DNA from: Oopsacas minuta
Taxonomy: Eukaryota; Animalia; Porifera
NCBI GenBank assembly: GCA_024704765.1
Contig: JAKMXF010000011.1
Location: 789,557 to 853,556 of the forward strand
DNA: 64,000 bases
Reading direction: 5' to 3'
Shown: one piece after another, positions 38,556 to 44,212 of the stretch
Position numbering within the stretch: the stretch's first letter is position 1
Layout of the letters: each line of letters begins with the position of its first letter
Made by a program: the position numbers and the translations under genes
The notes under the pieces: generated by a model
Told to the model about the DNA's origin: nothing
Seen by the model: only the letters and a program-made list of their open reading frames with translations
Database searches by the model: none

Positions 38556-40523
38556 TCATATTGGTGATAATAGTATCTTCATAGGATGTTTCGGTTTTAA
38601 CAAAATATTCGGTTCATACTCCATTTCTTCAGGGAAATCTCTGGGTAATGCCAAATTAAAACGTGTTAAAATCCGCGCAATAACATAATTCAACTCGTGT
38701 AGAGCCATAATCTGTCCAATACAATTTCTAGAACCAGCTGAGAATGGTATATAACTGAATGGTACAATCTTATCAATATTATCCTCAGAGAATCTGTATG
38801 GATTAAATTCACTTGGATTATCCCATACATTAGGATTGTTATGCATATGATTAATTCCTATTATAACCATGTAACCAGCTGGGAGAGCGTGTCCACCCAA
38901 CTCAGCTGATTCGGGTGATTTACGAATTATGGAAGTTACAGGGGGATACATGCGTAGAGATTCTTTGATACACATTGATAGGAACTTTAGATTTGATATT
39001 GACGACTTGTCTAGTGCTTTAATACCATCACAAACTAATGGAAAATATAATATAAAGACTAGATACAGTCATGCTAGTCAACTCCCCGTTATATCGAAGC
39101 TCAAGAAACCCGCATAATTCGATATAGGAGGATGTATCCATACTCGATATAGCGGGAGTTGACTGTATTTCAATATTGTACACTGAAGATAGGGAGAAAT
39201 CGCGAATTTTTAACAACAGTGTATTTCGAATTATTTAAGCACAAAAAAGTTGTCTAACATTTAAAAACTTCCTGTCTACACATGTCCTGATAATTAGTGT
39301 GTTTAGCTAGCAGATACAGTGTCCATGTAAGAGCTGTAGCAGTAGTATCATGTCCCTCAAATACAAACGTATCTACTTCATCTCTAATCTCTTCATCAGT
39401 TAATGTGGGATTAGAAGCATGTAGGAGAATATCCAGGAAATCTCTGAAAGAATTATACTTAGTGATTATTCGAATTTAGTAGGAAACTTTAAAACCACAA
39501 AAGCAAGCGCCTAGAGTCTTATTATATAGTAGTCATAGATATTGTCAAGGATATTGAATCTGACGATAGGCTAGCTGTTCCCAACCCATTTCACCAATCT
39601 TAACACATTCTCTGGACCCCCTGCCGTCGACCGTAGACCACCAAGGGCCAATAGACTCCAGGGTGGGAACCGCTAGAATAGACGAATTATAAACTAGATA
39701 ATAACCTGTAATTTGATTCTCGATAATTATGACTTTGTCCCATTAAACGTTTCCTCTCTAAAATAACATCATAAGTAAACTGCTTAGCTCTCTTACAAGT
39801 TAAATCAAATTCTCTTCCCAATTGTGTTCGATTAAAAATATAATTAAAATAGTACTTTTCAGGGTATCTAACACGAGTTAATACTATTCTAGTGAGAGCT
39901 GCTACATCTTGAACATATTGCAGTTGTTCTCGTTGAATTTGGCAGTCAGTCTTTACAGAGCAAATACACTGCAATATAATATCAAGAGTTAGATAGGGAA
40001 TCCATTCTTGTAGTACTACATGATCAGCTGATTGTATTGCCCATAGGTCTAACATTACATCTACACATTCTGAATATACAGCAAAGAATCCGTCTAGGAT
40101 TTGGTAATGGAAAGCTGGTGTTAATAGTTTTCTATGTCGAAACCATTTATCACCTTTAGATGTTAATAATCCATCTCCTATCCATTTGAAGAAGTTCGAA
40201 TAAAATGGACTTTTTGGGTAATTTTCATTGATTATAGTTTTCACAGAATCTGGATGTGAGACGAGTAAATTCATGACAGGACCCGTAGCAAACCGGCATA
40301 ACTTCGGTTGCTTCCAAGAAAGTTTCTTTCGAAAATTGAATAGCGTGTTAAAATCGTTCGCACTTTCATCTTCAACTATTTGTGTACCGCTGAGTAAGCC
40401 ACGTAATGGAGGTCCAGGTAATGAACGCATATAGAAATAAGCTCTTATAACTTTAATTATTCTGTACGTTAAATATGAACACATTATTGTCAGGAATGTA
40501 GCGATAATCAAAGTTAGAGTCAT
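38556..40523 (-). CDS. Cytochrome P450, CYP4 clan, copy A, 3 exons, 493 aa
   Basis: Exons 40523..39706, 39443..39259, 39034..38556. N-terminal TM anchor, [66 protein letters not shown]. Confidence 0.95.
39075..39165. mobile_element. MITE family A copy (short)
   Basis: TAGTCAACTCCCCGTTATATCGAAGCTCAAG ... GCGGGAGTTGACTG-TA, CYP copy A intron 2. Confidence 0.8.
39572..39675. mobile_element. hAT (Charlie-like) MITE
   Basis: TIR TAGCTGTTCCCAACCC ... GGGTGGGAACCGCTA; resembles the CAGTGGTTCCCAAC terminus type; CYP copy A intron 1; TSD degenerate. Confidence 0.65.
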
Positions 40524-40610
40524 GGCTAATTATACGAGAAGTGTAAAAATGAAATATCATAAAAATTACAACTAATTTACCGAAAATAACAAAAGTAAAA
40601 TTTCGACAAA

Positions 40611-42418
40611 TTAAATTGGTGAAATGTCTATCCTCAATGGTAACTTAGGTTTAAGTAAAATATTCATTTGAAACTCTATTTCTTCTGGAGAGTCTTTAGG
40701 TAATGCCAAATTAAAACGTGTTATAATCCGCGCAATAACATAATTCAACTCGTGTAGAGCCATAATCTGTCCAATACAATTTCTAGAACAAGCTGAGAAT
40801 GGTATATAACTGAATGGTACAATCTTATCAATATTATCCTCAGAGAATCTGTATGGATTAAATTCACTTGGATTATCCCAGATATCACTATGGTTATGCA
40901 TTTGGTAAATTCCAATTGTAGTGAGTAACCCAGCAGGTAGTTTATGACCTGCTACGGTAGATGGCTTAGCAGGACATCTTGATATATTTATAACTGGTGG
41001 GTAGAGACGTAAAGATTCTTTTATACACATTGGAAGGAAAATTAATGAGGTAATTGTTGATTTTGTTATTGATGAATTTCCATCCAAAACTAAAAGATCT
41101 TTGAAGATAAAATATTTTCAAAATACAGTCAACTCGGGTTATATAGAAATACCCGCTTATTTCCTAAGTCTGAAATTATACAAATCAGTTATATCGAACT
41201 CCGCGTATATCAAAGTAATTATCGCGGGTTTCTTGAGCTTCTATATAACGGGAGTTGACTGTTAACAAGTTGTCTAACATTTAAAAACTTCCTGTCTACA
41301 CATGTCCTGATAATTAGTGTGTTTAGCTAGCAGATACAGTGTCCATGTAAGAGCTGTAGCAGTAGTATCATGTCCCTCAAATACAAACGTATCTACTTCA
41401 TCTCTAATCTCTTCATCAGTTAATGTGGGATCAGAAGCATGTAGGAGAATATCCAGGAAATCTCTATACAAAACATATGTATTCATTACATGAGATTTCA
41501 GTAAAAATAATTAAAAATATATTGTAACTTCCACAAATGAGGTGCTAGGTAACCCGAAAAATGCTACCCTGTTTCCCCGTTTGTAGAGGTTTTACTGTAC
41601 CTATATTTGCTATTTTGTCCACTATCGCCATTTTCTAATTGACGTTTCCGAGCTAGAATTATTTCGTAAGTAAATTGTCTAGCCCTCTGACGAACTTCTA
41701 TAAACTCTCTCCCCAGCTGACTACGATTAAATATGAAGTCATAATAATACTTCACAGGTTGTCTGAACCTCAGTATAGTTATACGAGTTAGAGAAGCTAC
41801 ATCTTGAACATATTGCAGTTGTTCTCGTTTAATTTGGCAGTCAGTCTTTACAGAGCAAATACACTGCAATATAATATCAAGAGTTAGATAGGGAATCCAT
41901 TCTTGTAGTACTACATGATCAGCTGATTGTATTGCCCATAGGTCTAACATTACATCTACACATTCTGAATATACAGCAAAGAATCCGTCTAGGATTTGGT
42001 AATGGAAAGCTGGTGTTAATAGTTTTCTATGTCGAAACCATTTATCACCTTTAGATGTTAATAATCCATCTCCTATCCAATCTTGGATTAATTTGTATGT
42101 TGAATGTTTAGGGAAATTCTCGTTAAAAATAGCCTTTACAGATTCAGGGTCAGAACACAGGACCTGTATCATAGGACCAATTGCAAAACGACATAATTTC
42201 GGGTATTTTGATATCCATTTCTTCCTGAATTCTAATGTCTGATTCAAATCATTATTCGACTCTTGCAAAGGGAAGGAATTGCCGCGTAGAAGGCTTGGTA
42301 TTGGTGGACCAGGTAGAGAACGGAGGTAGATATAGTTACGTGTGGATTTGGCAAGTTTGTATATGATATAAGATAACAGGATAATCAGAATTGTGTATAC
42401 AATGGTAGTCCATGGCAT
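40611..42418 (-). CDS. Cytochrome P450, CYP4 clan, copy B, 3 exons, 493 aa
   Basis: Exons 42418..41601, 41463..41279, 41089..40611, same lengths as copy A. Same motifs, but the heme loop reads [11 protein letters not shown]. Confidence 0.92.
41126..41261. mobile_element. MITE family A copy
   Basis: TA-CAGTCAACTCGGGTTATAT ... ATATAACGGGAGTTGACTG, CYP copy B intron 2. Confidence 0.8.
41519..41599. mobile_element. MITE family C copy abutting the CYP copy B intron-1 donor
   Basis: Right end TTTGTAGAGGTTTTACTG-TA; core CCGAAAAATGCTACC shared with 31349..31418. Confidence 0.65.
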
Positions 42419-42656: not shown

Positions 42657-42714
42657 CCTCAAAACATCAGAATAAAATGCTAGAATTTTTACACTATATT
42701 CTTCACAAATAAGG
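42657..42714 (-). promoter_or_regulatory. SECIS element of selenoprotein gene 1
   Basis: Minus strand CCTTATTT-GTGA-AGAATATAGTGT-AAAAATTCTA-GCATTTTATTC-TGAT-GTTTTGAGG: UGA/GA kink-turn core, about 12-bp upper helix, apical adenines, lower helix. Confidence 0.85.
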
Positions 42715-42776
42715 CATATACAAGATGAGTAATAAACTAAAGAACATGCTAATATCCAGCTAGAACAATTTTAATG

Positions 42777-43073
42777 TTAAGTACATTCTTTCTTGATTTC
42801 AGCAATAATGCCAAGTAGTTCTGTTTCGTTCGGGAATCTATTTTCATTTTTCTTCTTGCTGTAAATAACCCTTCCTTTCACAAGTATAACAAAGTTCCCT
42901 GTGATAAATTTATCAGGTTTACACCCTACAGAAACACTGGCAAGTTCAGGGTGTTTCAAAAGGTCATTTTTGAACTCCCTGTACTTGCCAGAATAACCTC
43001 AGGCAACACAGTATTCTACAATTACATCAGCGTTTGGATTTTCATCTGATTGACTACTCATTAATCCACCCAT
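42777..43073 (-). CDS. SelW/Rdx-family selenoprotein, copy 1, 98 aa (Sec at codon 25, TGA 43001..42999)
   Basis: MGGLMSSQSDENPNADVIVEYCVA-U-GYSGKYREFKNDLLKHPEL...TGNFVILVKGRVIYSKK...RFPNE: CxxU motif, Rdx fold pattern, downstream SECIS. Confidence 0.92.
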
Positions 43074-43229
43074 TACTTAAAATCTAATTGTATAAAAAAA
43101 CATTAGCAAACTGTCGTTCAAAAATTACGTAACGCTACAAGGGGTGGTATGCGGGGAAATAATGAATATATGAATAGACACACTCAGCTATTTATAATTT
43201 CAAGCTCATTTAGAAACACTCAAATATTT

Positions 43230-43290
43230 CCTCAAAAATATCAGAATAAAATGCTAGAATATTTACATCAAATTCATCATAAATAGAGGC
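43230..43290 (-). promoter_or_regulatory. SECIS element of selenoprotein gene 2
   Basis: Minus strand GCCTCTATTT-ATGA-TGAATTTGATGT-AAATATTCTA-GCATTTTATTC-TGAT-ATTTTTGAGG. Confidence 0.85.
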
Positions 43291-43344
43291 AGATATAAGA
43301 GTATAAACTAATGAAACATGATAAATTCCAGTTAGACCTATTTA

Positions 43345-43644
43345 TTAAGTGCGAATCAATTCTTTCTTGATTTCAGCGACAATACTCAGAAGATCTTTTT
43401 CATCTGGGAACCTATTGTTATTCTTCTTGTCGAATATTACCCTTCCTTTGACACGCACGATAAAGTCTCCTGTCCCTCTTCTATCAGCTATGCCCCCTAC
43501 AGAAATGCTGGCAAGTTCAGGGTGTTTCAAAAGTTCATTTTTGAACGCCCTGTACTTGCCAGAATAGCCTCAGCTACCACAGTATTGTACAGTGACATCT
43601 GCATTGGGATTGTTACCACACTCACAGCTCATTTTCCCTCCCAT
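43345..43644 (-). CDS. SelW/Rdx-family selenoprotein, copy 2, 99 aa (Sec at codon 25, TGA 43572..43570)
   Basis: MGGKMSCECGNNPNADVTVQYCGS-U-GYSGKYRAFKNELLKHPEL...TGDFIVRVKGRVIFDKK..RFPDE; CxxU; SECIS downstream. Confidence 0.92.
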
Positions 43645-43686
43645 TCTAATAACAACTAATTGAATAGTAAAAAATAGTAAATTTTA

Positions 43687-43788
43687 CAGTCAACTCCCGT
43701 TATACCAAAGCTCAAGGGACCGCGGTAATTGCTTCGATATAAGCGGGTATTTCGATATATCCGTGTTCGGTATAACGAGGGTTGACTA
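43687..43788. mobile_element. MITE family A copy (short)
   Basis: TA-CAGTCAACTCCCGTTATACC ... GGTATAACGAGGGTTGACTA, between selenoprotein genes 2 and 3. Confidence 0.85.
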
Positions 43789-43851
43789 TACATATATGAT
43801 AAATATTCATAATTCTATTATAAATAAATAAAACAAAAAAGCTTTGAACTA

Positions 43852-43918
43852 AATTCCTGAAAAATCAGATTCAAATAGGAAAACACTTTACATTTGAATC
43901 GTCATAATAATAGGTGAA
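43852..43918 (-). promoter_or_regulatory. SECIS element of selenoprotein gene 3
   Basis: Minus strand ATTATT-ATGA-C-GATTCAAAT-GTAAAGTGTTTTCCT-ATTTGAATC-TGAT-TTTTCAGG: perfect 9-bp helix above the UGA/GA core, AAA in the loop; begins right after the stop codon. Confidence 0.85.
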
Positions 43919-44212
43919 TTAGTTCTTAGCTAAACTAGGAATTTCATCTTTAATCTGTGCTACAATCCTAACGGTATCTTCCTCAGTCGGGAATCTACCC
44001 TCCATATCTTGTCTACTCCAAACTATTTTCCCGTTAACTTCAACTTTAAAAGCATCTACAGCATCAATTTGTCTACCGATAACATTAACGCGGTTTTCCT
44101 TGAGGTTTTCCATTAAGTTCGCTTTCAATAAAGAGAACATGAAGAGAGAACCTCATCCCTGATTGTAAATAATCGCTACTTCAACTCTATTCACACTGTT
44201 TGTATTTCCCAT
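43919..44212 (-). CDS. SelW/Rdx-family selenoprotein, copy 3 (divergent, NxxU), 97 aa (Sec at codon 20, TGA 44155..44153)
   Basis: MGNTNSVNRVEVAIIYNQG-U-GSLFMFSLLKANLMENL...AFKVEVNGKIVWSRQDMEGRFPTEED; aligns with copies 1-2 at Y-x-x-x-U-G, F.V.V.G, RFP. Confidence 0.85.

Follow-up and report, generated by a model that had tools for sequence, protein, structure and literature searches.

Tandem clusters of selenoprotein genes are known from invertebrates, where they involve DI, GPx, SelU and AhpC-like genes and where some copies lose Sec or the SECIS (PMC3473315). Zebrafish carries SelW2a and SelW2b in tandem (PMC3316567), and the SelW family is marked by complex gene dynamics (PMC13134290). 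MIEN1 is targeted to membranes by prenylation (PMC3527542). In some selenoprotein genes only, a coding stem-loop adjoins the UGA, the SRE, which is stimulatory yet not essential (PMC8704476, PMC5727441). Only a handful of mammalian mRNAs have a proven SRE, and both the generality of these elements and the reason that some genes carry them and others do not are unsettled.

Here we analysed a locus of the glass sponge Oopsacas minuta, in a stretch of 64,000 nucleotides that we call the window. Three genes of the Rdx (SelW/SelW2/MIEN1-like) family, A, B and C, resemble the known tandem clusters (PMC3316567, PMC3473315) in their head-to-tail arrangement, in having a SECIS per copy and, across related assemblies, in the loss of Sec or the SECIS by some copies. 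Since such clusters are already known, the array by itself is unsurprising, and in this respect the interpretation in an earlier note on this DNA, which described Rdx-family selenoproteins as usually dispersed, low-copy genes, needs correcting. GUGA-type SECIS elements occur here as in the sponges of PMC3473315, whereas the number of SelW-type genes is greater than in the invertebrates of that study (five against 1-3, with 1 in Amphimedon). Also different from the known clusters is the repeated, species-specific duplication at one syntenic site. Beyond the tandem array, the locus adds three things: an SRE-like hairpin that covaries and whose loss in one paralog serves as a natural control, a conserved member free of cysteine and a shared lipid-anchor motif. 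The earlier note had recognised Rdx selenoproteins with SECIS elements, and rightly so, but it missed the hairpin behind the UGA, the myristoylation motif that the genes have in common and a further two SelW copies, which lie on a different contig. Our literature search found no paper on a glass-sponge selenoproteome.

Three UGA-interrupted genes and their SECIS elements

The features of the trio are as follows; all the genes and SECIS elements lie on the minus strand.

42777..43073, minus strand: gene A, Rdx/SelW selenoprotein of 98 aa, C-V-A-U, N-terminus M-G-x-x-x-S
42999..43001, minus strand: Sec codon 25 of gene A, in-frame UGA, kept in orthologs
42666..42706, minus strand: SECIS of A, GUGA-type core, 9/10 helix pairs
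43345..43644, minus strand: gene B, Rdx/SelW selenoprotein of 99 aa, C-G-S-U, N-terminus M-G-x-x-x-S, with Cys7 and Cys9
43570..43572, minus strand: Sec codon 25 of gene B, in-frame UGA, kept in orthologs
43240..43280, minus strand: SECIS of B, AUGA core, 8/10 helix pairs
43919..44212, minus strand: gene C, cysteine-free Rdx selenoprotein of 97 aa, N-Q-G-U, N-terminus M-G-x-x-x-S
44153..44155, minus strand: Sec codon 20 of gene C, in-frame UGA, kept in two orthologs
43864..43905, minus strand: SECIS of C, AUGA core, 10/10 helix pairs, weak Rfam SECIS_1 match
43685..43790, between C and B: copy of a MITE-like short inverted-repeat element, outside the selenoprotein system

Each frame contains one in-frame TGA and no more, and each ends in TAA; the C-termini read KECT (A), LIRT (B) and LAKN (C). 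Three TGA-interrupted genes of 97-99 aa were thus correctly predicted by the earlier note, and its description of them as intronless appears sound, judging from colinear family matches and the orthologs. The truncation by automated callers that it suspected is illustrated by three related assemblies, in which only the pieces behind the UGA had been called. Exact look-ups of truncated pieces gave no match, nor did a word search with parts of B and of C or a scan of JGI metagenomes.

SECIS elements were recognised by a rule comprising an RUGAN / UGAU core, a 10-position helix and then unpaired apical adenines; elsewhere in the window (128 kb, both strands) the rule had one further match only. 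The cores begin 70 (A), 64 (B) and 13 nt (C) past the stop, within the distance of about 130 nt previously claimed, and 247-292 nt past the UGA. The epithet "textbook" holds by motif but not by Rfam score: SECIS_1 scores the element of C only, at 24.1 bits against a gathering score of 35, with A and B unscored, and a gathering-level Rfam scan of the whole window returned no match. SECIS elements A and B had been described as sharing a nearly identical 3' arm with 5' arms that differ yet still pair. The 3' arms are in fact identical; of the three differences in the 5' arms, two still pair by wobble swaps and one breaks a pair. Rfam matches to C/D snoRNAs overlap with the SECIS motifs and were rejected.

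The pieces behind the TGA alone exceed the Pfam Rdx (PF10262) cut-off of 22.6 bits in all three genes (A 30.4, B 37.8 and C 27.7), which bears out the family assignment made in the earlier note. With TIGR02174, A and B score above the cut-off and C below it (26.1 against 34.2); C has the weakest family score among the five Rdx copies of the genome. The CxxU/CxxC site, which had been ascribed to all three genes, is present in A (CVAU) and B (CGSU) but not in C (NQGU). A and B belong to the Rdx/SelW family by every test run, whilst C is, by its sequence, an Rdx homolog with a variant site and not a canonical member.

Among solved structures, the nearest relatives are MIEN1, with an E-value of 9e-10, and mouse SelW, with one of 3e-8. 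A model of a full-length ortholog (P0016; pLDDT 80) aligned with TM scores of 0.64-0.69 to SelW and 0.60 to MIEN1, in agreement with the thioredoxin-like two-layer fold of the Rdx family. On the choice between SelW1 and SelW2/MIEN1, sequence is thus slightly nearer to MIEN1 and structure slightly nearer to SelW. The model of gene C covers the post-UGA piece, with the N-terminal strand left out; its top structure matches were all of SelW type and weak (E 0.1-0.3). No C-terminal CAAX prenylation motif of the MIEN1 type was found in A, B or C.

Genomic setting and history of the locus

The genome of O. minuta holds a tRNA-Sec (77.4 bits, cut-off 47), an intact SepSecS, selenophosphate-synthetase (SPS)-like exons and eEFSec. 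Its five TGA-bearing Rdx genes are A, B and C and a pair, D and E, on another contig:

L002:1480-1743 and L004:1474-1764 (G000 contig C309): second SelW pair D and E, 3.9 kb apart, both with CxxU and a GUGA-type SECIS

The stop codon of E is itself a UGA, just 39 nt ahead of the SECIS. Orthologs of D and E were found in a fourth assembly (L049/L050). We also observed two near-identical tandem GPx genes (L015 and L016; G000 contig C303), which share an in-frame TGA in an A-S-E-U context and differ at their N-termini; the SECIS rule found no element behind them.

The trio lies between a Frizzled gene, whose protein clusters with O. minuta Frizzled B, and two tandem multi-exon cytochrome P450 genes (38556-42418, minus strand), which are directly downstream of A and number one or two in the syntenic assemblies. 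The MITE-like element between C and B is TA-flanked and has 18 further TIR matches in the window; one copy stands 41 nt upstream of the start codon of B, and another (41124-41263) lies inside the neighbouring P450 gene. A promoter scan with a bacterial model gave chance-level results.

A profile of the three post-UGA pieces retrieved close relatives between Frizzled and P450 genes in three ENA assemblies, in the same gene order. The Frizzled proteins of these assemblies are 52-69% identical to that of the window, which suggests that the assemblies are of other glass sponges. The Frizzled-P450 interval contains 3, 3 and 1 Rdx genes, respectively: an ortholog of C (DQR-U) with two A/B-type genes; three A/B-type genes; and a lone ortholog of C (GQS-U). 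All of these related genes but one preserve both the UGA and the SECIS. In the exceptional paralog (L055:6001-6294) the UGA is replaced by CCA (C-P-A-P) and the SECIS and hairpin have decayed, whilst the frame is intact and the Met-Gly start is present; it is possibly a non-catalytic Rdx protein.

Past the UGA, dN/dS among the A/B-type genes is 0.16-0.37, and pairs of C-type genes have a pN of 0.25-0.31 at saturated pS; the region behind the UGA is therefore under selection at the protein level. In the family tree, which was built without named SelW/MIEN1 references and whose deep nodes are weak, the C-type genes make up a clade of their own, distinct from the A/B type (100/99), and the locus is separated from D and E (94/95). 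When the 3' UTRs were included, A grouped with B (88/86; the DNA tree from coding sequence alone did not resolve this grouping), as did the pair of a second species (100/99) and the trio of a third (100/100). From the C clade and the grouping of A/B-type genes by species, the locus and the split between C and A/B predate these species. The A/B-type copies would then have arisen repeatedly within species, or have been homogenised by conversion, and only the A/B duplication looks specific to O. minuta. The lineage-specific expansion that the earlier note proposed survives to this extent, with a duplication of A/B within O. minuta (88/86); as a description of the whole trio it fails, because three other assemblies have the locus in synteny and the divergence of C from A/B is older than these species. 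Altogether, we consider it probable that the locus is old in glass sponges and that its genes, which encode small selenoproteins of the thioredoxin-like Rdx (SelW/SelW2/MIEN1-like) kind, have been gained and lost as copies by local duplication.

Two further observations concern related sequences. At L053:6900-7431 there is a recent segmental duplication, which includes a B-type gene as well as the C ortholog's 3' end with its SECIS; the original start of this B-type gene is mutated, and with a new ATG four codons on the myristoylation motif is gone. A 457-bp contig (L056, protein P0017) filed under an NCBI Salmonella isolate encodes an Rdx fragment near the sponge A/B type, with a eukaryote-type SECIS behind it, and is probably eukaryotic contamination of the Salmonella assembly.

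A coding hairpin behind the UGA of A and B

Immediately behind their UGA codons, the mRNAs of A and B fold into a strong hairpin within the coding sequence:

42937..42991, minus strand: SRE-like coding hairpin of A, spanning +8 to +62 past the UGA, energy about -30 kcal/mol
43508..43562, minus strand: SRE-like coding hairpin of B, spanning +8 to +62 past the UGA, energy about -30 kcal/mol

Each comprises about 22 pairs, with pair probabilities near 0.9 in the fold of the whole mRNA. Their stability was reached by 0 of 2000 synonymous-codon shuffles (z -6.7 and -6.5), and the 812 coding windows taken from neighbouring genes included none as stable; along each SelW gene, the hairpin position is the stability minimum. 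Differences at degenerate codons between A and B are depleted in the stem (1 of 17, against 17 of 45 elsewhere; p 0.011). The hairpin was significant in all six A/B-type genes that keep Sec (z -3.5 to -6.8) and absent (z -0.5) in the CCA paralog that lacks both the UGA and the SECIS, this loss of hairpin together with Sec being a single event. When the structure derived from A/B was applied to these six related sequences from three species, 85% of cells were paired and 5 of the 22 pairs had changed on both sides. Both the pairing and the covariation exceeded all 500 shuffles and all slid registers, and in one species the register of the outer stem has shifted by one base. Conservation and covariation together identify the hairpin as a selected structure, an SRE-like element.

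Similar arrangements recur elsewhere in the genome. Paralog D has a sequence-unrelated hairpin at +9, which is kept in the D ortholog, and the two Sep15/SelM-family genes, and a SelU-like gene as well, have strong hairpins straight after the Sec UGA (z -5.6, -8.1 and -6.2; L068, L069 and L072 on contigs C166, C22 and C66). In A/B, D and these three genes the hairpin starts 3-14 nt from the UGA. Weak hairpins follow the UGA in GPx and a second SelU-like gene, and SelL has none. C and E retain the UGA and SECIS in the absence of a strong hairpin, so the hairpin is not required. The C-type genes have a small hairpin (+17..+38 past the UGA; noted together with the region 44170-44191 upstream of the UGA in C), alike in the consensus fold of all three, but it was significant in none of them singly against codon-preserving nulls. 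Matches of the hairpins to miRNA families scored about 20 bits against cut-offs of 80-117; these are generic stem matches and were rejected.

By description, the hairpin is like the SELENON SRE and SELENOP SRE1: a stem-loop in the coding region, on the 3' side of the Sec UGA and within a few bases of it, which only some genes have and which is added to the SECIS (PMC8704476, PMC5727441). Its stem, of about 22 pairs, appears longer. Our literature search, whose scope did not extend to the original SRE papers, found no report of an SRE for SelW or for sponges. There is a fair likelihood that the hairpin functions in Sec recoding. Starting 8 nt behind the UGA, it would sit at the mRNA entrance of a ribosome that has the UGA in its A site, and would tip the balance from termination to Sec insertion like the SELENON SRE; C, having no strong hairpin, should then be recoded less efficiently.

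Alternatively, the genes may be real selenoprotein genes in which the hairpin serves another role, such as mRNA stability, protection from NMD, a binding site for a protein, or a pause for co-translational myristoylation or folding. Conservation and covariation demonstrate selection on the structure and not its job, C and E on C309 do without it, stems linked to a UGA are cautioned to differ possibly in function (PMC5727441), and a stem near the SelS UGA is inhibitory (PMC6844570). Nonetheless, we think this unlikely: unrelated hairpins adjoin the Sec UGA in genes whose proteins have different lipid motifs and locations, each SelW gene is most stable at exactly this site, and the hairpin decayed in the copy that lost Sec. 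Much less likely still is that the hairpin is a by-product, either of protein constraint on the helix after CxxU or of recent gene conversion between A and B. Residues behind Sec are indeed conserved in the family, and A and B are nearly identical across the hairpin stretch, but synonymous nulls with the protein held fixed never matched the A/B energy, and two non-sponge SelW mRNAs that we checked had no such hairpin. Moreover, orthologs of 45-60% protein identity retain the hairpin through compensating changes, which conversion inside one genome does not explain. We therefore retain the recoding element as the preferred reading of the hairpin.

A cysteine-free Rdx protein and a shared lipid-anchor motif

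Gene C differs from SelW, SelW2 and MIEN1 (Rdx12; PF10262, TIGR02174) in having x-Q-x-U in place of CxxU and no cysteine. This is true of C and both of its orthologs (NQGU, DQRU and GQSU), all three with zero cysteines; the orthologs keep the UGA and a near-perfect SECIS at about 55% protein identity and saturated synonymous divergence. Monothiol glutaredoxins and 1-Cys peroxiredoxins likewise work with a single catalytic residue and no internal resolving Cys, an outside thiol resolving the intermediate. These are other families, and the likeness of C to them lies in its absent cysteine. By analogy, C would most likely run a monothiol-type cycle in which its lone Sec reacts with a thiol from outside, either that of glutathione or that of a target protein, and we lean slightly towards C being catalytically active as a mono-Sec enzyme.

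That C is instead a non-catalytic or decaying copy (a pseudo-enzyme or pseudogene) with a UGA that is a true stop would fit the loss of the first cysteine of CxxU, and indeed of every cysteine, the lowest family score of the five copies and the want of a strong hairpin. It is most improbable, however, given that the UGA, the 10-pair SECIS and the open frame have been kept in two other species across saturated synonymous divergence, and that in one assembly the locus has no Rdx gene besides the C ortholog. The chance that the UGA codons in general are true stops or are spliced out, and the SECIS-like motifs fortuitous, is negligible: in-frame GT-AG pairs able to skip the UGA exist on paper and the Rfam scores of the SECIS are under threshold, but UGA stands at the catalytic position of the family in 9 of 10 locus genes from four assemblies, each UGA gene has a SECIS, with several different pair types standing in for one another in the helix, and the sole UGA-less gene is also the sole SECIS-less gene. 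A, B and C are almost certainly real selenoprotein genes. Each would be expressed from its own mRNA, on which the 3' SECIS would recruit SBP2 and eEFSec/Sec-tRNA and thereby have the UGA decoded as selenocysteine, and A and B would cycle a Cys-Sec selenenylsulfide.

The proteins of the locus also have a common N-terminus. Nine of the 10 genes start with Met-Gly and seven of them have Ser6; B and two orthologs have extra cysteines near the N-terminus, and D and E start with Met-Ala. The segment ahead of the first strand is predicted to be disordered. The consensus for N-myristoylation is Gly2 with a small residue, mostly Ser, at position 6, and the genome has a gene for N-myristoyltransferase (NMT). 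From these motifs, the locus proteins are probably N-myristoylated: the initiator Met would be removed, Gly2 myristoylated and the proteins held at the cytosolic face of a membrane. Here they differ from MIEN1, which has a C-terminal CAAX prenylation site (PMC3527542) where the locus proteins have an N-terminal myristoylation motif.

Three overlooked SelW genes in tandem are chiefly an annotation matter. The wider value of the locus is as a series provided by nature: sister genes that combine UGA, SECIS and hairpin; a paralog that has the UGA and SECIS but lacks the hairpin; and a paralog that has lost all three together. The compensatory changes show which stem pairs to mutate. More tentatively, and with less confidence than in any of the readings favoured above, hairpins behind the UGA may be a common and probably ancient second recoding signal of glass-sponge selenoprotein genes, by which paralogs are ordered into a selenium hierarchy, and C may be the founder of an undescribed, myristoylated, cysteine-free, single-Sec Rdx subfamily. 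The function of SelW is poorly defined, and gene C lets a SelW-type Sec be tested without a resolving partner. The myristoylation motif, for its part, suggests that Rdx proteins can become membrane-bound in a second way, alongside the prenylation of MIEN1.
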